NCBI RefSeq assembly: GCF_000737315.1
Contig: NZ_JMCB01000013.1
Coordinates: 1 to 64,000, forward strand
Length of the DNA: 64,000 nt
DNA from: Hyalangium minutum
GTDB lineage: Bacteria > Myxococcota > Myxococcia > Myxococcales > Myxococcaceae
Direction: 5' to 3'
How positions within the stretch are numbered: position 1 is the stretch's first letter; every line of letters begins with the position of its first letter. The notes below the pieces were generated by a model. The model was not told the origin of the DNA. It saw only the letters and a program-made list of their open reading frames with translations, and did no database searches. Positions 34,049-44,192 of this stretch are shown piece after piece. The translations under genes were made by a program, and so were the position numbers.

Positions 34049-37015
34049 ATGTGGGGACGTCGGTGGGTGGTCCTAACGGCGTGGGCATGCGTGGCGGCGA
34101 TGGTGGGGGGCTGTGATCGGCCCAGCTCGAACGGGCGAGGCGCGCGGGCGGCGTTCGCGGCGCGCCCCGAGCTGCTCGACTTCGGCCCTGCGGCCGTGGG
34201 CTCGACGAAGACGGTGAAGCTGAAGCTGGCCAATGGCGGCCGCGCCCCGGTGCGCATCGAAGGCGCGCTCTCCAGCGTGCCCAACGTAGAGGTTCCGCCG
34301 TTCGAGCCCTTCTCGCTGAGCGCGGGTGGGGAGACGGAGATCGAGGTCCACTTCACGCCGGAGGTGGAGGGCTCGGTCAAGGGCGTGGTGGAGATCTTCA
34401 CGGACGCGGATGCCTCTGAGAAGACGTCACAGGTGGCCTTCACGGGCTTGGGCGTGAATGCGCTGGTGGAGGTGAAGACGCCCTCGCTGGACTACGGCAA
34501 TGTGACGCTGGAGACCGTGGCCATTCGCGACCTGGTGTTGCGCAACCCCACGAGCGTGGACAGCTCGATGCGGCTGGAGCTGAGGGGGCCGGACGCCGAC
34601 CAGTTCTCCTCCACGATGACCGGCAAGGACGTGGTGCTGAAGGCGGGCCAGGACTGGACGCTGCCCGTGGGCTTCAAGCCCAACCGGCTGGGGACCGCGT
34701 CGGCGGAGGCCCGCGTGAAGGTGTGCGACACGTGTGAGCCCGTCGTCGTCCCGCTCACGGGCATGGGCGTGGCCGCCGAGCTGGAGATCTCCCCGGTGCG
34801 CCTGGACTTTGGCCGCGTGGCCGTGAACGCCACCGCCGAGCAGAGCATCATCGTGCGCAACCAGGGCAGCGCGCCCATGTCCTATACGGGCGCCAACATC
34901 GTCTCCAACGCGGGCGGCGTCTTCCGCGTGGTGAGCACGCCGCTGCCGCAGGGCAACACGCTCAAGCCGGGCGATGCCGCGGAGATCCGCGTGGCCTTCA
35001 CTCCGGCGGCGGTGGGCACCGCGCCCGAGGGCAAGGTGGAGATCCAGGTCCGCGCCTCCAACTCTTCCGCGCCCGTGCCCAAGGTGGCGCTGGCGGGCGA
35101 GGGGGGCTCTTCCTGCATCGGCGTGCAGCCCAGCCTGGTCGACTTCGGTGAAGTGGCCGAGGGCATGGCGGCCACCCGGCAGGTGCAGGTCTACAACCGG
35201 TGCCGCACCCAGGTGCTGGTGAGTGACTTGCAGATCGCCACCCAGCGCGGCGGCTACTTCTCGCTGGCCCAGGCACCGGCGAGCCTGCCCATCGATCCGG
35301 GCAAGTCCGCGCCGGTAGGCGTCACCTTCACGCCTCGGGCCGGGGCGGGGGATGGCGTGGCGCAGCTGTTCGTGACGGTGCGCCAGGGCGCCTCCACCTC
35401 CACCGAGGGCGTGGCGCTCAAGGGCTCCGGCAAGCTCTTCCCGCCGTGCCAGTACACGATGACGCCGCAGGTGCTGAACTTCGGCCGCGTGCCGGTGGGC
35501 TCGGAGGTGGCGCTCGGGGTGTCCTTGCGCAACACCGGTACTACCCCGTGCTTCCTGGCCTCCATGCAGCTTGCGGGTGGCTCGGATGCGGTCTTCAGTA
35601 CGGGGCGCGTGGAGAACACCGTGGTGCTGCCCGGCATGAAGGCTTCGCTGCTGGTGCACTTCAAGCCGGACGCGGCCGCCACCTTCGGCGGGCTGGCCGA
35701 GGCCTGGGTGAATCACCCCAGCGCGGGCCACCCCACCGTGACCGTGCAAGGCGAGGGCTCCACGGGCTGCTTCGCCGTGCAGCCCACCCACGTCGAGTTC
35801 GGCCTCGCCAAGCTCACCTGCGAGCCGCGCGCCAAGGAGCTCGTCGCCTATAACCGCTGCGCTGGCCCCGTCACCGTACAGAGCATGGTGTTGGAGCGGG
35901 ACACCGAGGAGATCTCCCTGTCCGAGTCGCCCCACTTCCCGCTCACGCTGGAGGCCAACCAGAGCTTCCGCATCCACGCCAAGTATGAGCCCACGGACGA
36001 GGGCGAGGATCTCGCGGCGCTGCGCTTCGATCTCGGCCAGGGTTCCGTCTACACCGCGAGCCTTGTCGGCCGGGGCGCCTCCAACGCCAACCAGGTGGAC
36101 TCTTTCATCCAGGAGTCCGCTGCCAAGGTGGACGTGCTCTTCGTGGTGGATAACTCGGGCTCGATGATGGAGGAGCAGCAGAGCCTGGGCGCCAACTTCG
36201 CGGCCTTCATGAGCGCGGCCACCGCTTCCGGCGTGGACTACCACATCGGTGTCACCACCACGGGCCTGGACTCTTCCTCGGGCGGCTGGTCGTCGTGCCC
36301 CGGCGGCGCCGAAGGTGGCGAGAGCGGCCGGCTCTTCCCGGTGAACGGCTCCTCGCCGCGCATCATCACCCCGCTCACGCCGAACGCCGCGGGCGTCTTC
36401 GCCACCAATACCCACGTGGGCGTGTGCCACTGGAACGAGCAGGGCCTCGAGGCTGCCTACCGCGCCCTGTCGGATCCGCTCCTGCACAGCCTGGACGATC
36501 CGCGCACCCCGCAGACCAGCGACGGCAACGGCGGCTTCATCCGCGACGAGGCGCGCCTGGCCATCATCTTCGTCACCGACGAGGAGGACTTCTCCAGCCA
36601 GCCGGTGCCCTTCTATGAGACGTACTTCAAGGCGCTGAAGAGCAATGATCCGGGCAAGCTGAGCGTCTCCGCCATCGCAGGCCCGGTGGATCTGTCCTCC
36701 TGCTCCACCGCGAGCAGCTCCGGCACCCGCTACATCCAGCTGGCCAATGCCACCGGCGGCGTGGTGGAGAGCATCTGCACCCCGAACTGGGCCGAGTCCC
36801 TCAAGAAGCTCTCGGACACCGCGTTCGGCCCGAAGCGCTCCTTCCCGCTGTCGGATGTGCCGGCGGACACGAGCCAGATTGTCGTGAGCGTCAACGGCGT
36901 CCAGATCACCTCGGGCTGGGTCTACGACGGGGCCAGCAACTCCATCGTGTTCGACCAGGGCGCCGCGCCGCCTCCGGGCGCCTACATCGAGGTGACTTAC
37001 CCCCTGGGTTGCTAG
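34049..37015 (+). CDS. Surface lipoprotein with ~6 tandem Ig-like (choice-of-anchor D / ASH-type) domains and a C-terminal VWA domain
   Basis: Lipobox MVGG-C. Repeats of P..LDFG.V......L.N.G..P. MIDAS motif DVLFVVDNSGSM, EQGLEAA..AL, IIFVTDEED. Confidence 0.88.
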   Translation: MWGRRWVVLTAWACVAAMVGGCDRPSSNGRGARAAFAARPELLDFGPAAVGSTKTVKLKLANGGRAPVRIEGALSSVPNVEVPPFEPFSLSAGGETEIEVHFTPEVEGSVKGVVEIFTDADASEKTSQVAFTGLGVNALVEVKTPSLDYGNVTLETVAIRDLVLRNPTSVDSSMRLELRGPDADQFSSTMTGKDVVLKAGQDWTLPVGFKPNRLGTASAEARVKVCDTCEPVVVPLTGMGVAAELEISPVRLDFGRVAVNATAEQSIIVRNQGSAPMSYTGANIVSNAGGVFRVVSTPLPQGNTLKPGDAAEIRVAFTPAAVGTAPEGKVEIQVRASNSSAPVPKVALAGEGGSSCIGVQPSLVDFGEVAEGMAATRQVQVYNRCRTQVLVSDLQIATQRGGYFSLAQAPASLPIDPGKSAPVGVTFTPRAGAGDGVAQLFVTVRQGASTSTEGVALKGSGKLFPPCQYTMTPQVLNFGRVPVGSEVALGVSLRNTGTTPCFLASMQLAGGSDAVFSTGRVENTVVLPGMKASLLVHFKPDAAATFGGLAEAWVNHPSAGHPTVTVQGEGSTGCFAVQPTHVEFGLAKLTCEPRAKELVAYNRCAGPVTVQSMVLERDTEEISLSESPHFPLTLEANQSFRIHAKYEPTDEGEDLAALRFDLGQGSVYTASLVGRGASNANQVDSFIQESAAKVDVLFVVDNSGSMMEEQQSLGANFAAFMSAATASGVDYHIGVTTTGLDSSSGGWSSCPGGAEGGESGRLFPVNGSSPRIITPLTPNAAGVFATNTHVGVCHWNEQGLEAAYRALSDPLLHSLDDPRTPQTSDGNGGFIRDEARLAIIFVTDEEDFSSQPVPFYETYFKALKSNDPGKLSVSAIAGPVDLSSCSTASSSGTRYIQLANATGGVVESICTPNWAESLKKLSDTAFGPKRSFPLSDVPADTSQIVVSVNGVQITSGWVYDGASNSIVFDQGAAPPPGAYIEVTYPLGC

Positions 37016-37043
37016 CCCTGAGAGGGAAAACACGCAGGACCCT

Positions 37044-37080
37044 GGGGGCGTCCCGAGCGGGGCGTCCCCATCGTTATTTT
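37044..37080 (+). terminator. Probable intrinsic terminator after the VWA lipoprotein gene
   Basis: GGGGGCGTCCC-GAGC-GGGGCGTCCCC forms an 11-bp stem (2 G:U pairs), followed by ATCGTTATTTT. Confidence 0.45.
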
Positions 37081-37160
37081 CGCTTCTCACTGTTTCTGGA
37101 CAGACAGAGGAATTCTCCCTCGACATAGGGGTTGGCGCGCGGCAGTTTGAAAGGCGGTCA

Positions 37161-38090
37161 ATGCCTCCAGAATCCCTGCTTGTCGTTGGAGTAGGAGACA
37201 TCCATGGGCGCTTCCACCGGGTGGAGGCGTGGATGGATGCGCTGGAAGCGGCGCGCGGTCGCTCCGTGGATTTCATGGTGGCGGTGGGGGACGTGGAGGC
37301 GTTCCGGCGGGCGGATGACCACCGGCGCAAGGCGGCCAAGCGCGCCATGCCAGCCGAGTTCGCCGAGTACGCGGACGGCACGCGGCGGATGAAGCGGCCG
37401 CTGTACTTCATTGGCGGCAACAACGAGGACTTCGAGGCACTGCACGACCACCCCGAGGGTGTCGAGCTCGCACCGAACGTGCACTACCTGGGGCGGGCGG
37501 GGCTGCGGCACGTGAGGGGGCTGCGGGTGGGCTACCTGTCGGGCATCCACGCGCCGCGCTTCTTCGAGCAGCCCATAAAGCGGCCCACGTCGCTGGATTC
37601 GGCGAAGCAGGCGGGCTACTTCCGCACGCCCGAGGTGGAGAAGGTGACGGGGATAAGGGACGTGGACCTGTTCCTGGTGCACGAGTGGCCCCGGGGCATC
37701 GTCCAGCGCGCCCGGGACGAGGCGCTGCCCTCCTCGCGGCCGCTGCCGTCCTACTGGATTGGCAACCCCATCACCCGCAGGCTGGTGGACACCATCCGGC
37801 CGAGGTGGGTGCTGTGTGGGCACTCGCACAAGGGGTTCGCCGTGTCGCTGGGCGGCGAGGGCCACCGGCCGGTGACACGCATTGCCTGCCTGGATCAGGC
37901 TGCCCGGCCGGAGGAGGCCGTGTTCTGGCTGGAGTACGAGGGCCGCGAGCCCGTGCGTGCGGGGTGGGGCCTCTCGGGCGAGGTGGCGTGGAAGGCGGGA
38001 GAGACGTGGAACCTCACGCGCCTGCCGGCCACCCCGCCTCCCCGTGTCTCCGAGGACGCAGGCGAGATGGAGGAGCACGAGTCTCCCTGA
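37161..38090 (+). CDS. Calcineurin-like metallophosphoesterase resembling RNA lariat debranching enzyme Dbr1
   Basis: GDIHG, [18 protein letters not shown]..G...[22 protein letters not shown], IGNP....L...[11 protein letters not shown]. Order and spacing match the Dbr1/CWF19-type MPE domain. Confidence 0.85.
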   Translation: [309 protein letters not shown]

Positions 38091-38096
38091 GCGAGC

Positions 38097-41000
38097 TCAG
38101 GCGTTCGTGGTGGGCTCCTCCGGAAGGGAAGGCGGGCCCGCGGGCTGCAGCAGCACCTCGAAGGTGGTGCCCTGGCCGGGCGTGCTGCGCACACGGATGT
38201 CTCCGCCCATGGCCTTGACGTAGGTGTGGCACAGGGACAGCCCCAGCCCCGTGCCCATCCCCACCGGCTTGGTGGTGAAGAAGGGATCGAAGATGCGGGG
38301 CAGCACCTCCGGCGGAATGCCCGTGCCGGTGTCGCTTACCTCCACCCTGAGCGGGCCCGCCTCTTCCTGCCGCGCGGTGAGGCGGATCTCGTGCTGGTCC
38401 GCGTGGCCCTCGGGGATGGCCTGGGCCGCGTTCACCAGCAGGTTGAGGAACACCTGGCCCAGATGCGTCTCGTCTCCCATGACCCAGAGCGGCCCCGTGT
38501 AGTCCTTCACCAGCCGGGCCCGGTGGCGGATCTGCCCGCCCGCCATGGAGGCCGCCAGCTCCAGCACGGGCGCCAGATCCACCTGCGTGGGCTGCCGCGG
38601 CTTCGCTCGGGAGAACGTGCGGAGATCCTGGATGATGCGGCTCATCCGATCGGCACCTTGCAGTGCCTCGGCGAGCGCCTGCCCCACCTCCTCCATCCGC
38701 TCGCGGTCCTCCGGGGGCACGTGGAGCGCACGCACCTCCGAGTCCACGAAGTGCAGGTTGGAGATGACGAAGGACAGCGGGTTGTTCAGCTCGTGGCCCA
38801 CGCCTGCGGCCAACGTGCCCACCGCTGCCAGCTTCTCCGCGTGGACCAGCCGCTCCCGCGCGTCCTGCAACTCCTGGACGTGGGCCTGCAGATCCGCGTT
38901 CACCGTGGCCAGCTCCTCGGTGCGCTGGGCCACGTGGGACTCCAGCTGGCGCTCGCGGCGGCCGGCCTGGCGCAGGCGCAGCCACACCAGGCCCGCCACG
39001 GTCAGCACCACCGCCAGCCCGCCCATCGCCCGGAACCACCCCGTTTGGTGGAAGCGAGGTTTCAGCTCGAACATCAGCTCCACGCCCGGGGCCGCGCCAC
39101 CTCCGTCCGCGTACTCCGCCTCCACGAGGAACCGGTAGCTCCCCGGCGGCAGGCTCAGGTACCAGGCCTCGCGCCGGGTGCCGGCCTGGACCCAGTCCTC
39201 GTCCGCCCCCTCGAGCCGGAAGCGGAAGCGCACCTGCTGGGGTGCGCGCAGGCCCGCCGAGGTGTAGCGGATCTCCACCCGGCCCTCACCCCGGGGGATG
39301 GAGCCCCGCTCTGACGGAGGGATGGGACGTCCGTCTACCCTCAGCTCTTCAATGAGCACCGGAGCCGGGGGCAGCCGCGCGGCCTCGGGGCCCGGCGTAT
39401 ACGCGACAGCGCCGCGGATGGTGGGGAACCAGAGCCGGCCGCTGCGATCCCGCCACCCAGCGGGGGCACCCAGGGCGTTGCACTCCGCCGAGCGCATCCC
39501 ATCCTCCGCGCCATAGACGCGCGGGGTGAGGTGCACGAGCCGGCCCTCGGCCACCGCGTCCAGCTCCGCCTTCGACACGTGGGAGATGCCCTTGTTGCTG
39601 CTCATCCACAGGTCGCCCTGGCCGTCTTCGAGGAGCTGGAAGATGCGGTTGTCGTAGAGCCCGTCCGTCACGGAGAAGCGCCGGAACTGTCCCTCCTTCC
39701 AGCGGAAGAGCCCGTCATCGGTGCCGATCCACAGCACACCGTTGCTGTCCTCGTGGAGCGCCGCGACCTTGCTGTTCAGGGGCCCGCGCTCGGGCGCCAG
39801 CAGGGTGCTCCGCCCCTGGAGGAGGTGGGCCAGCCCGCCGTCCCGGGTGCCCAGCCACAGGCCTCCGGCGGCGCTGGCACGCAGCAAGCTCAGGTCCTTT
39901 CCAGGGAGCCCGCCCTCGGGCGTGAAGGGCTCGAAGCGCTCCCCGGTTCTGCGCGCCAGTCCCGTGGGCGTGCCCACCCAGAGGGTGCCCTGGGCGTCCA
40001 CCTCCAGGTAGAAGGCGCGCACGTCCGTCAGTCCCTGTGCCTCGCCGTATGCGGTGAACGTACCGTCGCGCCAGCGGTTGATGCCGCTGCGCGTCCCCAC
40101 CCACACGTTGCCTTCCGGGTCCTCCGCGAGCGTGCGGACGCGATCCAGGACGAGGCCGTCGCGCGGCGTCCAGGACGTCATCGTCCCGTCGCTCTGCATG
40201 CGGGTGACGCCGCCTCCCAAGGTGCCGAACCAGATGCTGCCGTCTCGCATCTGGCGGATGGTCAGCACCATGTCGCTCCCCATGCCCTCCAGTGGCCCGT
40301 AGGGCGTGAAGGGCGCGTCCTTGAGGCGGTGGAGCCCTCGGGCCTCCGTGCCCACCCACAGGTTGCCCTCGCGATCCTCGAGCAGCGTGCTCACCAGGCA
40401 GCCTTCCAGCGGGTGCCCGCGAGGCAGCTCCGAGAGCTGGCCGTGAGACCACCGCTGCAGCCCTCGGCCCAGCGTCCCCATCCAGAGTGTGCCAGCCCGA
40501 TCGAAGAGCATCAGGCCAATGGGAGCACCGGCCGTGCCTGCTCCCGGCACCGGCCGCATGACTCCGTCCACGAGCTGGTAGACGATCCCCGCCTCGGTGC
40601 CGGCCCAGAGCGTGCCCCGCGAGTCGAGGGTCATTGTCCGCACTGTGACGCGCTTCTGGCCTTCGAAGGGCAAGGGCGCCGTCCATGCGGTCCCATCCCA
40701 TCGCTGCAGGCCTCCCTCGCTGCCCGCCCAGATGCTGCCCTGCTCGTCCTCCACAAGCGCCAGCACCGTGTCGTTGGCCAGCCCGTTGGCCACGGTCCAC
40801 GTCCGCAGCTTCCCGTCGGAGACTCGCGAGATGCCGTGCCCATCCGAGGCCACCCACAGACTTCCGTCGCGGGTGGCCAGCAGCTCGTTGGGGCTGGAGA
40901 GGGCCTTGTCCGGCGGAGCGGCCAACGCGAAGAAGGTGCCCTCCCGGAAGCCTGCAATGCCCTCGGTGGTGCCGATCCACAGCGTCCCATCCGGCGCGAG

Positions 41001-41282
41001 CTCCAGGTTCCGCACGGAGCGGCTGGGCAGGGCGTGGGTGTTCGCCGGCTCGAAGACGGTGAAGTTCACCCCGTCGAAGCGGACCAAGCCCTCCCAGGTG
41101 CCGCTCCACAGGTAGCCGTCCGGCGTCTGGGCCATGTCCAGCACGCTGTTCTGCGGCAGCCCCTCCGCCGTCTGCCACGCCCGGTGGGGGAACTGGAGCA
41201 GGGCCTTGTCCGGGTCCAGCGCCCAGGCATGCCCCCAAGCTCCCAGCACGGCTCCCAGCAGCAGGATCCCCCGCAGGCTCAT
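38097..41282 (-). CDS. Sensor histidine kinase with periplasmic beta-propeller (Reg_prop) repeats and a Y_Y_Y domain
   Basis: Signal peptide, many D..G.LW.GT..GL repeats, LPPGSYRFLV, one TM, VGHELNNPL, QVFLNLLVNAAQA, DTGTGI, FFTTKP, GLGLS. Confidence 0.92.
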   Translation of the reverse strand: MSLRGILLLGAVLGAWGHAWALDPDKALLQFPHRAWQTAEGLPQNSVLDMAQTPDGYLWSGTWEGLVRFDGVNFTVFEPANTHALPSRSVRNLELAPDGTLWIGTTEGIAGFREGTFFALAAPPDKALSSPNELLATRDGSLWVASDGHGISRVSDGKLRTWTVANGLANDTVLALVEDEQGSIWAGSEGGLQRWDGTAWTAPLPFEGQKRVTVRTMTLDSRGTLWAGTEAGIVYQLVDGVMRPVPGAGTAGAPIGLMLFDRAGTLWMGTLGRGLQRWSHGQLSELPRGHPLEGCLVSTLLEDREGNLWVGTEARGLHRLKDAPFTPYGPLEGMGSDMVLTIRQMRDGSIWFGTLGGGVTRMQSDGTMTSWTPRDGLVLDRVRTLAEDPEGNVWVGTRSGINRWRDGTFTAYGEAQGLTDVRAFYLEVDAQGTLWVGTPTGLARRTGERFEPFTPEGGLPGKDLSLLRASAAGGLWLGTRDGGLAHLLQGRSTLLAPERGPLNSKVAALHEDSNGVLWIGTDDGLFRWKEGQFRRFSVTDGLYDNRIFQLLEDGQGDLWMSSNKGISHVSKAELDAVAEGRLVHLTPRVYGAEDGMRSAECNALGAPAGWRDRSGRLWFPTIRGAVAYTPGPEAARLPPAPVLIEELRVDGRPIPPSERGSIPRGEGRVEIRYTSAGLRAPQQVRFRFRLEGADEDWVQAGTRREAWYLSLPPGSYRFLVEAEYADGGGAAPGVELMFELKPRFHQTGWFRAMGGLAVVLTVAGLVWLRLRQAGRRERQLESHVAQRTEELATVNADLQAHVQELQDARERLVHAEKLAAVGTLAAGVGHELNNPLSFVISNLHFVDSEVRALHVPPEDRERMEEVGQALAEALQGADRMSRIIQDLRTFSRAKPRQPTQVDLAPVLELAASMAGGQIRHRARLVKDYTGPLWVMGDETHLGQVFLNLLVNAAQAIPEGHADQHEIRLTARQEEAGPLRVEVSDTGTGIPPEVLPRIFDPFFTTKPVGMGTGLGLSLCHTYVKAMGGDIRVRSTPGQGTTFEVLLQPAGPPSLPEEPTTNA

Positions 41283-41366
41283 GGCCCCATCATCCCAAGA
41301 AACACGAAGGGCCGGGCGCCACGATTGGCACGCCCGGCCCCTTGCTTCAGCCCCTACCGAGTGCGG

Positions 41367-42662
41367 TTACCAGGGGCAGTTGACCACTTCCACCGTGCGG
41401 GTGAGCGGGGCCGCGCTGTTGCCGCCGCTGTCCGTCAGCGTGTACTGCACCGTGTAGACGCCCTCGACCCAGCCGTTGGGGAAGCCCGTCCAGTGCGCCT
41501 CGGGGGTGATATCGCCGTAGCAGGTGTCGAACGCCGTCCAACCCGGATCCACCCACTGGCTGCCGCACTGGTGGACCATGTGCGTGGGGCCCTTGAGCGC
41601 GAACTGCGGCGGCTTGGTGTCGTTCACCGTCACGTTGCGGATGGCGCTGACCGTGCGGCCCTGAGCATCCCACGCGATGTACTGCACGGGGTAGGTGCCC
41701 TCGGCGCAGGTGGCCGGCCCGGGGCCGTACGCGTCGTGGCCCGAGTTGTAGTAGTGCACCTCGAGATCCGAGCAGTCCGCGTTGAACGCCTGGGCGCCCG
41801 GATCCGTCCACGTCGTCTCACCGCACTCCAGCGTCATGTCCAGCGAGCCGTTGGGCACCAGCAGCGGGCCCGAGCCCGGCGTGCACGCGGAGCTGGTGCT
41901 CATGTTGCTGCTGTTGCGGGTGAGGTTGTTCGGGTTGTTGCTGCACACCTGGCTGTTCACGCACGCCAGCGCCGCGTGGCTGCAGGTGCCGTCCGTGTTG
42001 CAGATGTCCGTGGTGCAGCTGTCGCCATCGTCGCAGCTCGCGCTGCCGCTGCAGGCGGTGGAGACCACCTCGCCGTTGAGCACCACGTCCGCGCGGCGCA
42101 GCCGGTTCTCCGAGCAGCAGTCATCCACCTGGGTGATGACCACGCGGTTGAGCTCGCCCGCCTTGACGTGCGAGGCCAGGTTCGTCGTGCCGCTGCCGCC
42201 CAGGTACACGTAGCTGCCGGGGATCACCAGGCCGCCCGGGTGCTGGGAGTTGTAGATGGTGACGCGCGAGCCGTCGTCCATGCCGGTGAAGCTGATGGTG
42301 AACGTCGTCACGGCCACGTTGGACGGGATGTTCACGAACGTCTGGAAGTAGGTGAAGTCGCCGTACGCCAGACAGGTGGTCGGCGCGCTACACACCCGAG
42401 AGGGAATGTCGAAGTTGATATAGTCCGGGTTCGGCGCCGACACCCAGTCCGGATCCGAAGCGGCCGGAACGCTGGCCACGTCGTACTCACAGTTCTGCCC
42501 GTGCTGCGTGGGGTTGCAGCTGAACCGCACGAGTCCCAGCGGATTGCTGGCCGTCACCTCGTTACCATTGTGCATCTGCCACGGCGAGCGGCTCTGGGCC
42601 GCCGCGGGCAGGGCGAAGAGAACGGCGAGAGTTCCTACCGCGCCTACCAACTTGTTGATCAT
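41367..42662 (-). CDS. Secreted protein: jelly-roll-like N-domain, a CTDC-type Cys repeat and two DUF5011/HYR-like Ig domains
   Basis: Start ATG 42662 (RBS GAGGGGG), signal peptide ...LFALPAAA|QS, CDDGDSCTTDIC, and two WxDPG.xAFxxC...G.Y.V.Y..xD..G repeats. Confidence 0.8.
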   Translation of the reverse strand: MINKLVGAVGTLAVLFALPAAAQSRSPWQMHNGNEVTASNPLGLVRFSCNPTQHGQNCEYDVASVPAASDPDWVSAPNPDYINFDIPSRVCSAPTTCLAYGDFTYFQTFVNIPSNVAVTTFTISFTGMDDGSRVTIYNSQHPGGLVIPGSYVYLGGSGTTNLASHVKAGELNRVVITQVDDCCSENRLRRADVVLNGEVVSTACSGSASCDDGDSCTTDICNTDGTCSHAALACVNSQVCSNNPNNLTRNSSNMSTSSACTPGSGPLLVPNGSLDMTLECGETTWTDPGAQAFNADCSDLEVHYYNSGHDAYGPGPATCAEGTYPVQYIAWDAQGRTVSAIRNVTVNDTKPPQFALKGPTHMVHQCGSQWVDPGWTAFDTCYGDITPEAHWTGFPNGWVEGVYTVQYTLTDSGGNSAAPLTRTVEVVNCPW

Positions 42663-42709
42663 CTGGTGTAGCCCCCTCGTCGGAGCGGCCAGCCCGTTCT
42701 GGCCAAACT

Positions 42710-42744
42710 TTTTGACGCCCAACGTCACAGTACCAGCGTCAAAA
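42710..42744. promoter_or_regulatory. Operator-like inverted repeat
   Basis: TTTTGACGC-N17-GCGTCAAAA (perfect 9-bp arms), about 48 bp upstream of the 42662 start. Confidence 0.4.
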
Positions 42745-42834
42745 GTGGTTCTTACTGTACCGGGAGAGCAGGCTCGATCTCAAGGGGGGAACAGGTATTA
42801 ATCGCGTTTTTCAGATCTTGATAAAGGCGGCCAA

Positions 42835-43075
42835 TCAAGGGGCAGGGAAGAGGTAAGTCTCAATAAAATCAAAGGCTTGCTGATCGTGGGTGATCTTTGC
42901 ATCCACATCCGCCTGCAAGAAAGTACCTCCTGCGCTGAAGGCCTCATCGAAGCTGTGGTGGACGTTGTGTTGGAGTTCGCCAGCAGCGCCATGAGGGTGC
43001 TGCCCCCGTGGGACCAGCCGAGCACGCCCACGCGGTTCATGTCGATGCCGGGCACGGTGGTGAGGACCTGCTGAA
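42835..43075 (-). pseudogene. Remnant of a dienelactone hydrolase / alpha-beta hydrolase
   Basis: One frame reads VPGIDMNRVGVLGWSHGGSTLMALL (nucleophile elbow). A different frame immediately continues NVHHSFDEAF...QQAFDFIETYLF* (catalytic His segment and C-terminus). The middle and N-terminus are missing, and the region is lower in GC. Confidence 0.7.
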
Positions 43076-43217
43076 AATCTTCCCGGCAGGCGGAGAGAGG
43101 AGCTCGGGCTGGGAGGTGACCGTCCGCTTTGACGGACAGGAATCCGCGCAACCGGCAGACGCCTCCTTCCGATAATGGAGGTATCAGCCACACTGAATCC
43201 CAAAGGCGGGGTCTGCC

Positions 43218-43355
43218 ATGAACCAGGCTTCCGAAGTCATCAACCTCGAAGAGTTCCGCAAGAGCCGCAACGCCAAGCCGGCCACCGTTCGCGCCACCCC
43301 TCCGACGACCTTCTGGTCGCCCGTCTGGGTGTGGGTCATGGTCTGGTCGGCGTAA
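43218..43355 (+). CDS. Small 45-aa protein with a Trp-rich C-terminal tail
   Basis: Below the ORF-track cutoff. MNQASEVINLEEFRKSRNAKPATVRATPPTTFWSPVWVWVMVWSA* with typical GC3-biased codons. Confidence 0.65.
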   Translation: MNQASEVINLEEFRKSRNAKPATVRATPPTTFWSPVWVWVMVWSA

Positions 43356-43361
43356 ACCCTC

Positions 43362-44192
43362 TTAGGTCGAGGAGGGCGCCAGGCCCGCGCTGTGTTTCAC
43401 CAGGATCGCCCGGGAGTACGCCATCGCGAAGCCGAGGCGCGCTGCATTGCGCTCCGTGGGAATGCCCGGCCCCGAGATGATGACGGCAAGCTGGCTGCCT
43501 TGCTCTCGGCCCCGCTCCATCCTGGCGGCGATCAGGGCCTGCTGGACGCCTCGTCCTCGCCACGCGGGCTTCACGGACGTTCCGAACAGGGCAGTGAGGC
43601 CGTCCCGGGACTCGCAGCCCCCCGCGCCAATGGGTTCGCGTCCCTGGCGAGCCAGGAAGGCGTCCTGCACGGGCCGGCGCACGGCCTTCATGCCCAGCTC
43701 CAGGAACGCCGGTGGCAGAGGCTCGCCGTCCTGGAGGAAGCCGCTCTCGGCGACCTCTACGTACTCGCGGACCGCGGCGTCATCCTCGGGGTTGACGCGC
43801 TCGACGGTGATGCCTGTCGGCCAGCCGAGTGGCAGCAGCTCCCGGTAGGAGTCCTTCTCCGAGAGCTTGCGGACCAGCACGTTGGCGAACTGCTGGAGCA
43901 CGAACCCGCGCTGCGCCAGCGCGTTGAGCAAGGCCGGGAGGACGAAGGGGCTCAGCTCCACACGCGGCTCGACGCCTCGGGTGGTGAAGAACGCGATGAG
44001 CTCATCCAGCTCCGCATCGGTGAGCGGCCGCTCGTACCCGATTCCGCAGGCCTTGTTCACGTAGGAGCCGGGGCCATCGCAGGCCAGCCAGCCCTCGGCC
44101 AGGGGGCGGCGTTCCCGGGCCAGCTCCGAGGCGGCGAGCGCCTGCCGGCGTTCCACGAGCCGGGCGATGTCGATGAAGCTCCAGTCATTCAT
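43362..44192 (-). CDS. GNAT family N-acetyltransferase
   Basis: LFGTSVKPAWRGRGVQQALIAAR (motif A R/QxxGxG), TERNAARLGF. Confidence 0.85.
   Translation of the reverse strand: MNDWSFIDIARLVERRQALAASELARERRPLAEGWLACDGPGSYVNKACGIGYERPLTDAELDELIAFFTTRGVEPRVELSPFVLPALLNALAQRGFVLQQFANVLVRKLSEKDSYRELLPLGWPTGITVERVNPEDDAAVREYVEVAESGFLQDGEPLPPAFLELGMKAVRRPVQDAFLARQGREPIGAGGCESRDGLTALFGTSVKPAWRGRGVQQALIAARMERGREQGSQLAVIISGPGIPTERNAARLGFAMAYSRAILVKHSAGLAPSST

Follow-up and report, generated by a model that had tools for sequence, protein, structure and literature searches.

Dbr1, the RNA lariat debranching enzyme, is described as the sole enzyme for which hydrolysis of the 2'-5' branch of RNA is known, and the papers that say so treat it in eukaryotes only (PMC10470207, PMC9202583, PMC12238851). 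Among metallophosphoesterases (MPEs), its hallmarks, numbered as in Entamoeba histolytica (Eh), are an invariant Cys14, a lariat-recognition loop (LRL) around the invariant Arg158 that is "not found in other MPEs", a C-terminal domain consisting of residues 262-354, His91 as the catalytic acid, and His16 and Tyr64 as the residues between which the branch adenine stacks (PMC4176325). Deletion of the loop, deletion of the C-terminal domain, or mutation of Cys14 abolishes complementation (PMC4176325). The 64-kb window analyzed here, a stretch of contig NZ_JMCB01000013.1 from the myxobacterium Hyalangium minutum, contains on its forward strand a gene for a Dbr1-like MPE of 309 amino acids. The likeness of this protein to Dbr1 is far above chance and above the generic MPE motifs. 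Compared to Dbr1, the protein carries Asn in place of the general-acid His (motif III, GGNNE), a state that is invariant throughout its clade.

A full-text literature search found no paper on bacterial Dbr1-type proteins, although an unindexed description is possible, and the words "bacteria" and "prokaryote" do not occur in a 2025 DBR1 review. A first-pass annotation of the window, made from the sequence alone, had called such a function undescribed in bacteria, which is in line with this search. The similarity itself has already been caught by automated pipelines in the form of JGI KO-style labels.

Likeness to Dbr1 in sequence and predicted fold

The ATG-started open reading frame (ORF) has a GC content of 0.72, 0.49, and 0.89 at codon positions 1, 2, and 3 (third-position GC, GC3, 0.887). 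A 306-residue ORF on the reverse strand (37158..38078) shows a GC3 of 0.72 and the mirror image of this codon-position pattern; the forward frame is the coding frame and the antisense ORF is its shadow. The gene is real and under purifying selection, with a nonsynonymous-to-synonymous rate ratio (dN/dS, Nei-Gojobori) of ~0.3-0.5 against four orthologues from Myxococcus stipitatus (L081), Stigmatella aurantiaca (L082), and two metagenome-assembled genomes (MAGs; L084, L085), where dS is probably underestimated. The protein is predicted to be cytoplasmic, as it has no signal peptide and its first β-strand begins at residue 5.

The only Pfam match is PF00149 (Metallophos; E 2e-13, 51.7 bits against a cut-off of 21.5 bits), and an NCBIfam scan gave no match. 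All motifs of the PF00149 superfamily (DxH / GD / GNH(D/E) / H / GH, on a β-α-β-α-β fold) are present, with motif III departing only at the non-ligand His. When all PDB chains were searched with phmmer at E<=10, the sole matches were Dbr1 of E. histolytica (E 1.2e-21, query residues 9-228 against chain residues 12-239) and CWF19L1 (1e-7 and 1e-4); no further MPE appeared. An AlphaFold2 model built on 30 homologues (predicted local distance difference test, pLDDT, 89; predicted template modeling score, pTM, 0.89) leads to the same neighbors. In a Foldseek search of the PDB, Dbr1 entries occupy ranks 1-9 (best E 2e-20, template modeling (TM) score 0.74), CWF19L1 follows at ranks 10-11 (E 1e-17 and 1e-13), and the next MPE is LpxH at E 6e-7 and TM 0.41. 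This is the structural comparison that the first-pass annotation had proposed, and unrelated MPEs are not the best matches: its claim of a specific Dbr1/CWF19L1 homologue, as opposed to a mere Icc/CpdA-type MPE, is borne out by both searches. The boundaries it gave for the ORF and for GGNNE are exact, and every segment of the window protein that it quoted was found. Of the human Dbr1 strings that it gave, none occurs within the homologue representatives, though shorter motif strings, FSAHLH among them, do; the equivalent alignment to Entamoeba Dbr1 was computed with HMMER.

The residue register rests on the HMMER alignment to 4pef_A, with numbering as in the literature. The five motifs fall into place in this alignment (Table 1), and the LRL counterpart comprises 29 residues that match the Entamoeba loop without gaps and end at an invariant Arg155, equivalent to Arg158; the loop-length segment noted in the first-pass annotation is confirmed. 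The two differences that it had named, Asp for the motif-I Cys and Asn for the catalytic His, are likewise real. Asp is the ancestral MPE ligand at motif I. Two further departures from Dbr1, beyond those named earlier, emerge from the alignment, namely Arg61 at the position of the adenine-stacking Tyr64 and the absence of the C-terminal domain; residue Y70 aligns with Entamoeba Tyr73. The Dbr1 C-terminal domain PF05011 found no match in the window protein at E<=10, whereas a eukaryotic control (P0196) matches it at 2e-31. In place of this helical domain, the model contains a Trp-rich tail of short β-strands (residues 254-260, 263-269, and 275-278).

A word-indexed search with the window protein yielded 331 homologues, of which the best 120 share 57-94% identity. 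The named ones belong to Hyalangium, Stigmatella, Archangium, Cystobacter, Corallococcus, Myxococcus, Aggregicoccus, and MAGs of Myxococcaceae or Myxococcales, and the nearest of them are Hyalangium species at 83-84% identity. Many bear the automatic JGI label "lariat debranching enzyme", while NCBI names are "metallophosphoesterase" or "serine/threonine protein phosphatase". Conservation was counted over 125 sequences of this GGNNE clade, including the four deepest 50%-cluster representatives and reaching down to ~51% identity. N87, N88, E89, R155, H174, H221, and H223 are each present in 125/125 sequences; among those covering the respective site, D44 is kept in 123/123, R61 in 122/123, and D13 and H15 in 102/102. 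All seven metal ligands are therewith invariant across the clade. H54 and H130 are kept in 114/123 and 104/125 members, respectively. The gene product is best described as a putative binuclear MPE of the Dbr1-like branch, with metal binding predicted from its conserved ligands. Since N88 and the ligands do not vary, the His-to-Asn change is an old, fixed, and selected state, not decay, and the metal center is strictly constrained. Invariance in 125 members together with the dN/dS of 0.3-0.5 indicates that the metal site and Asn88 are both under selection.

Table 1 Features of the Dbr1-like MPE gene and its upstream region in the window (Eh, Entamoeba histolytica Dbr1 numbering).
Feature	Position	Strand	Evidence or remark
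Dbr1-like MPE gene	37161..38090	+	ORF; PF00149; PDB matches Dbr1/CWF19L1 only; Foldseek; GC3; dN/dS
Motif I, D13-I14-H15 (Eh C14-V15-H16)	37197..37205	+	HMMER alignment; D and H in 102/102
Motif II, G43-D44 (Eh Asp45, bridging metal ligand)	37287..37292	+	Alignment; D in 123/123
Arg61 at the Eh Tyr64 position	37341..37343	+	Alignment register; R in 122/123
Motif III, G85-G86-N87-N88-E89; N87 = metal ligand Asn90, N88 for general-acid His91	37413..37427	+	125/125
Residues 127-155, LRL counterpart (Eh 130-158)	37539..37625	+	Gap-free alignment; pLDDT 87-97
Motif IV, H174-E175 (Eh His180-Asp181)	37680..37685	+	Alignment; H in 125/125
Motif V, G220-H221-S222-H223 (Eh His230/His232)	37818..37829	+	Alignment; both His 125/125
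Trp-rich C-terminal segment, W256...W269-G270...W277...W283	37926..38009	+	Clade-specific; invariant or near-invariant columns
988-aa predicted lipoprotein, N-terminus ends ...MVGGC	34049-37015	+	Upstream neighbor of the MPE gene
Terminator-like hairpin, 12-bp stem, 9 G-C pairs, then TCGTTATTTT (T-run)	37043..37080	+	Between lipoprotein stop (37015) and MPE start

A wider bacterial family of Dbr1-like proteins

The GGNNE clade belongs to a much larger set of relatives. A phmmer search of 1.84 billion cluster representatives returned 1340 matches at E<=1e-3, 601 of them at E<=1e-10. Tabulated by motif, the 130 longest of the 150 best representative matches fall into three groups. The GGNNE clade itself is characterized by GDIHG, GGNNE, GYFR, and ~80 residues beyond motif V. 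The Asp-type group consists of seventy-odd short proteins of ~250-290 aa with GDxHG, GGNHE, xH(D/E)WP, and CGHxH, an insert of LRL length (~34 residues in the tabulated span), and ~45 residues beyond motif V. The third group comprises 45 Cys-type proteins with GCxHG, CGDF, GGNHE, YHxR, SHDWP, and SAHLH, mostly with long C-termini; the one example checked carries the DBR1 C-terminal domain. Almost all bacterial and eukaryotic relatives outside the GGNNE clade have GNHE. Short Cys-type proteins were considered as a prokaryotic Dbr1, which is ruled out for P0234, as it sits on a eukaryotic contig.

A 12-sequence profile of the Asp-type group matches Entamoeba Dbr1 over the whole MPE domain at 2e-53; CWF19L1 follows at 7e-14, and below 0.01 there is no further MPE of solved structure. 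The family keeps a "PAKYRxLGDF" motif, whose K-Y contains the Tyr64 equivalent. When one genome per GTDB species was scanned with this profile, 105 Asp-type loci were confirmed in at least eight phyla. The best 80 of the 105 are listed (L001-L080, for example L001 6001-6801, L004 6001-6783, and L064 6001-762+6000), and proteins of the family are numbered within P0131-P0260. Among these listed loci are Planctomycetota, many filamentous or colonial Cyanobacteria, Myxococcota (Myxococcus, Corallococcus, Pyxidicoccus, Archangium, Sorangium, Polyangium, and Nannocystaceae), Acidobacteriota (Sulfidibacter, Acanthopleuribacter, Holophagae, and Blastocatellia), Abditibacteriota, Bacteroidota, Chloroflexota, and some Gammaproteobacteria. 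Archangium lansingense holds both forms, an Asp/GNHE paralogue (L030) and a GGNNE-type protein (P0038), and species of Myxococcus and Corallococcus appear in both the GGNNE homologue list and the Asp-type locus list. Because GNHE and the Tyr are retained, the Asp/GNHE members would be better candidates for bacterial 2'-5' debranching than the window protein.

Neighbor-joining (NJ) trees of 259 trimmed columns with 100 bootstraps place the window protein within this family. The GGNNE clade and the Cys-type clade are each monophyletic in 100/100 replicates. In at least 91/100 replicates, the sequences closest to the GGNNE clade are Asp-type proteins of bacteria, one to five in number, and a grouping of GGNNE with the Cys-type clade, which holds eukaryotic Dbr1, is seen in 2/100. 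On the basis of this grouping, the window gene appears to be a derived, vertically inherited, Myxococcaceae-specific paralogue nested in the bacterial Asp-type family, not a recent eukaryotic import and not, as judged from the trees, the direct sister of eukaryotic Dbr1. Horizontal transfer from eukaryotes was considered and rejected, as the clade groups with Asp-type bacterial proteins and not with the Cys-type. The evolutionary link to Dbr1/CWF19 that the first-pass annotation had raised is real, with the qualification that it rests with the wider Asp-type family, of which the clade of the window protein is a derived branch.

The Asp-type family also includes unusual members. Two have lost metal ligands independently (P0132, GEVHG/VGN/GGAHE/CGRLQT; P0153, GDLNG/TGN/GGSDE/CGRMKK), so that pseudo-enzyme forms arose in bacteria as they did in eukaryotic CWF19L1/Drn1. 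P0144 (510 aa) is a fusion of an Asp-type MPE with a SAM-methyltransferase domain, and P0139 (757 aa) carries a 490-aa N-terminal extension lacking a domain assignment. P0164 (801 aa) combines the motif-I Asp with eukaryote-like CGD / YHxRR and a 575-aa C-terminus without a domain assignment; P0177 and P0199 are Asp-type proteins with C-terminal extensions of ~210 aa, also unassigned. One locus, L007 (BNCN01000008.1, "Comamonas sp. KCTC 72670"), shares its sequence (48% to the first sequence of the profile) and flanking gene order with Myxococcus L003 and L006 and the MAG L005; the record may be misassigned to its genus, or contamination may be present in the assembly.

Genomic setting

The MPE gene lies in the core chromosome. 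The window also encodes NadA, PurA, UvrA, an AddAB-like helicase-nuclease pair, ComEC, CarD, dNK, GDPD, two PTR2 transporters, and kinases. Long antisense shadow ORFs overlie real genes across the window, whose GC content is ~69%. One example is a 998-aa frame at 34427-37423 on the reverse strand. They show the mirrored codon-position pattern, with GC1 high and GC3 lower, and are not to be counted as genes. An Rfam scan of the window returned no RNA family at the gathering score (0 matches), and a Pfam scan, which covered the 41 likely window genes apart from four short ones and a ROK-adjacent gene, found no reverse transcriptase. On these grounds, the presence of a retron or of a group II intron was rejected for the window, and the absence of a retron agrees with what had been stated at first pass. 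An anti-phage defense role was likewise rejected, since the only PADLOC match, PDC-S10 (E 9e-4, 16.5 bits), reflects generic MPE similarity.

Upstream, a block composed of UvrA (-), EamA (+), the ~988-aa lipoprotein (+), and the MPE (+) is also found in M. stipitatus, in Stigmatella, and in a MAG at 61% identity, and is absent from one at 58% identity (L085). The lipoprotein has repeated Ig domains of the ASH / Cep192 / HYDIN / TMEM131-like type and, in its C-terminal region, a vWA-like DxSxS motif (VVDNSGSM). The hairpin between the two genes (Table 1) implies that the MPE gene has its own promoter, and the gene downstream, which encodes a sensor kinase, is convergent; for these two reasons, the MPE gene is most likely monocistronic. 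An operon or functional pairing with the lipoprotein was rejected, given the strong hairpin between the genes, the absence of the pairing in L085, and the signal sequence carried by the lipoprotein only.

Further downstream, an opposite-strand PAP2 gene and the AddAB-like pair recur. Compared to Stigmatella (L082 8931-10401, with the order MPE - CBS - PAP2 - AddB-like - AddA-like), the window contains additional genes at 38097-44192, which separate the MPE gene from the PAP2/AddAB-like block. They encode a Reg_prop/Y_Y_Y sensor histidine kinase (1061 aa), a surface Ig-like protein (453 aa), an unassigned product of 276 aa, and a ROK-family protein. Gene content downstream of the MPE gene is therefore variable.

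The neighborhoods of the 80 listed Asp-type loci were compared by clustering all ORFs within 5 kb through all-against-all BLASTP. No neighbor was common across phyla among these loci, and the recurrent ones are generic, namely Ser/Thr kinases, pentapeptide repeats, a response regulator, an RND pump, and an aldo-keto reductase. Tandem pairs of intact and degenerate MPEs were rejected, as the apparent doubles at the 80 loci are single-linkage or read-through artefacts. In six loci of Myxococcus/Pyxidicoccus (L009, L011, L016, L047, L048, and L049), a DeaD-type DEAD-box RNA helicase gene follows the Asp/GNHE paralogue ~85 nt downstream on the same strand (for example, L048 6901-8691). This is the sole RNA-related neighbor seen among the 80 loci; confined to one genus group, the adjacency may be inherited synteny.

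Possible activity and comparison with known systems

We favor, with a probability of roughly 0.45, the reading that the window protein is a metal-dependent enzyme whose chemistry has changed and whose substrate is a phosphoester, of a nucleotide or a nucleic acid, that has a good leaving group; classical debranching of lariats or of multicopy single-stranded DNA (msDNA) is probably not its role. An active enzyme is preferred because the clade keeps every ligand and an invariant Asn, whereas pseudo-MPEs, such as human CWF19L1 and the bacterial P0132 and P0153, lose ligands. Two metal ions would be bound, and the nucleotide or nucleic-acid ester would sit in a pocket like that of Dbr1, with Asn88 in a hydrogen bond to the scissile phosphate and the basic helix H54-R61 as the substrate-binding element. 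With the general acid lost, a 2'-alkoxide leaving group would not be protonated and expelled efficiently, and it is on this predicted inability that our argument against classical debranching is built. Most likely, the substrate would instead be a phosphoester that can release its leaving group unaided by a general acid; a 5' end linked through pyrophosphate or phosphoanhydride is one example, and other activated esters would also qualify.

Mutants of yeast Dbr1 provide an experimental parallel. H86A, H86N, and H86Q phenocopy dbr1-null for intron accumulation, yet H86N retains 42% of the activity on bis(p-nitrophenyl) phosphate (bis-pNPP), compared to ~20% for H86A and 26% for H86Q, which has been ascribed to the low pKa of p-nitrophenol, for which no general acid is needed (PMC5113202). 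H86A is grossly defective in debranching in vitro and binds branched RNA with a Kd of ~54 nM in a Mn-dependent manner, while C11D is nearly null in vivo and keeps 7% of the bis-pNPP activity, as measured in a eukaryotic background (PMC5113202). Several points weigh against our reading. Gene context, both at the loci of the window gene and its orthologues and at the 80 Asp-type loci, offers no functional clue, and the activated-ester idea draws on a single mutant study of a distant orthologue. Furthermore, the conserved H54 or H130 might act as a substitute acid, and the conservation of the ligands could serve metal-dependent binding without cleavage, comparable to the Mn-dependent binding of Dbr1-H86A (PMC5113202).

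Such binding leads to a tentative alternative, which we hold possible though rather unlikely: a non-cleaving, metal-dependent binder or regulator, analogous to Drn1/CWF19L1, whose target would be the 2'-5' branch in retron msDNA or in the lariats of group II introns, or whose partner would be the Asp/GNHE paralogue. It would fit the yeast protein, in which His-to-Asn kills debranching while H86A still binds branched RNA (PMC5113202), and the eukaryotic pairing of Dbr1 with its inactive homologue Drn1, which enhances debranching (PMC4105757). Human CWF19L1 likewise has Asn-Asn at motif III, intact Asp/GNHE paralogues occur also in Myxococcaceae, and degenerate members arose independently in the bacterial family; against this stand the invariance of every metal ligand, unlike in known pseudo-MPEs, the lack of a tandem or operon paralogue pair in the 80 loci, and a window free of retrons in the Rfam scan and the Pfam-scanned genes. 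The branch nucleotide of msDNA is G, which Arg commonly reads, and the Tyr64-to-Arg61 change would suit it, but this match and the partnership are steps that we only infer. We regard it as doubtful that the protein truly debranches the 2'-5' linkage of msDNA or of group II intron lariats, with the part of the His taken by another proton donor or by water bound to a metal. The fold and the lariat-recognition loop are of Dbr1 type, the JGI name points the same way, H54 and H130 are conceivable substitute acids, and the GGNNE clade lies within the myxobacterial group in which Mx162-type retrons are carried by vertical descent. The debranching function suggested at first pass is unlikely on several counts: the fixed Asn88 corresponds to yeast H86N, which is null in vivo as are H86Q and H86A (PMC5113202), and the Cys and the C-terminal domain, each required in Entamoeba/yeast Dbr1 (PMC4176325, PMC5113202), are both absent, as is the Tyr64 equivalent. 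Neither the Rfam scan of the window nor the neighborhoods of the 80 Asp-type loci revealed linkage to a retron or intron, no reverse transcriptase was found among the Pfam-scanned window genes, and the same genera hold GNHE/Tyr-intact paralogues that are better candidates.

The least probable of the alternatives is an MPE acting on a non-nucleic-acid substrate (a phosphoprotein, a lipid-linked or a small-molecule phosphoester), with the Dbr1 likeness reflecting ancestry only. NCBI names some orthologues "serine/threonine protein phosphatase", a generic automatic label; the structural neighbors after Dbr1/CWF19L1 are LpxH and purple acid phosphatases, and the PAP2 lipid-phosphatase gene recurs nearby on the opposite strand. 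The LRL, which contacts RNA in Dbr1, and its anchoring Arg are however strictly conserved, and Dbr1/CWF19L1 is separated from other MPEs by 13 orders in E-value and by a TM of 0.74 versus 0.41. On a wider scale, we regard as quite unlikely, but worth stating, a bacterial counterpart of the Dbr1/Drn1 pair. In this picture, 2'-5' debranching in bacteria would be the work of the widespread Asp/GNHE proteins, the first such bacterial enzymes, with group II intron lariats or retron msDNA as substrates, and eukaryotic Dbr1 would descend from this stock; the GGNNE paralogue would be a metal-dependent, non-cleaving reader, tuned by its Tyr-to-Arg change to the G branch of msDNA, that protects, senses, or hands over msDNA and leaves it intact.

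Much of the interest rests with the wider bacterial GNHE family, a large family that matches Dbr1 specifically and has a recognition loop of LRL length. If its members debranch, this would explain how msDNA or the lariats of group II introns are turned over in bacteria, and an enzyme associated with the spliceosome would have a concrete origin in bacteria. The window protein, for which we prefer the reading of an active enzyme with altered chemistry, is a natural counterpart of H86N that is selected and has its metal site intact. It offers a clean test of what the Dbr1 scaffold does without its general acid, be it new chemistry or binding without cleavage.

Compared to Dbr1 (4PEF, 5K78, and others, E. 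histolytica), the window protein shares the MPE fold, the five motifs in register, a 29-residue LRL at the same place and of the same length with R155 equivalent to R158, and the HxWP of motif IV. It differs by Asp13 for the signature Cys (Eh Cys14 / yeast Cys11), Asn88 for the general-acid His (Eh His91 / yeast His86), and Arg61 for the adenine-stacking Tyr64, with H15, the equivalent of His16, still present. A short Trp-rich β tail stands where Dbr1 has the PF05011 domain (Eh 262-354), and the protein is bacterial and branches with Asp-type proteins, not with the Cys-type clade. CWF19L1/Drn1 (8RO2 chain L1) has a Dbr1-like fold as well (Foldseek 1e-17, TM 0.72 normalized to the target) and resembles the window protein in its Asn-Asn at motif III (GANNQE versus GGNNE), a likeness that is probably convergent. 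The human protein has lost metal ligands (GDVEG, VGN, TSPWP), whereas the window protein keeps all seven; moreover, the CwfJ_C_1 and CwfJ_C_2 domains are absent from the window protein and present in a CWF19-like control (P0252).

LpxH (UDP-2,3-diacylglucosamine pyrophosphatase) is distant, with E 6e-7, TM 0.41, and 14% identity, and has a lipid-binding cap where the window protein has the lariat-recognition loop. Its motif III naturally has another residue in place of the His (GNRD), and the bond that this MPE cleaves is a pyrophosphate. The nearest relatives are the Asp-type proteins (32-42% identity, E 1e-42 to 1e-20), which share with the window protein the motif-I Asp, the insert of LRL length, and the lack of the Dbr1 C-terminal domain. 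They differ in having GNHE and K-Y versus GGNNE and K-R, and the tail of the window protein is ~35 residues longer; the window clade would thus best be treated as a derived subfamily of the Asp-type family. As a whole, the window protein misses four Dbr1 features and both CWF19L1 features, and is a variant within the Dbr1-like MPE branch, not a Dbr1.

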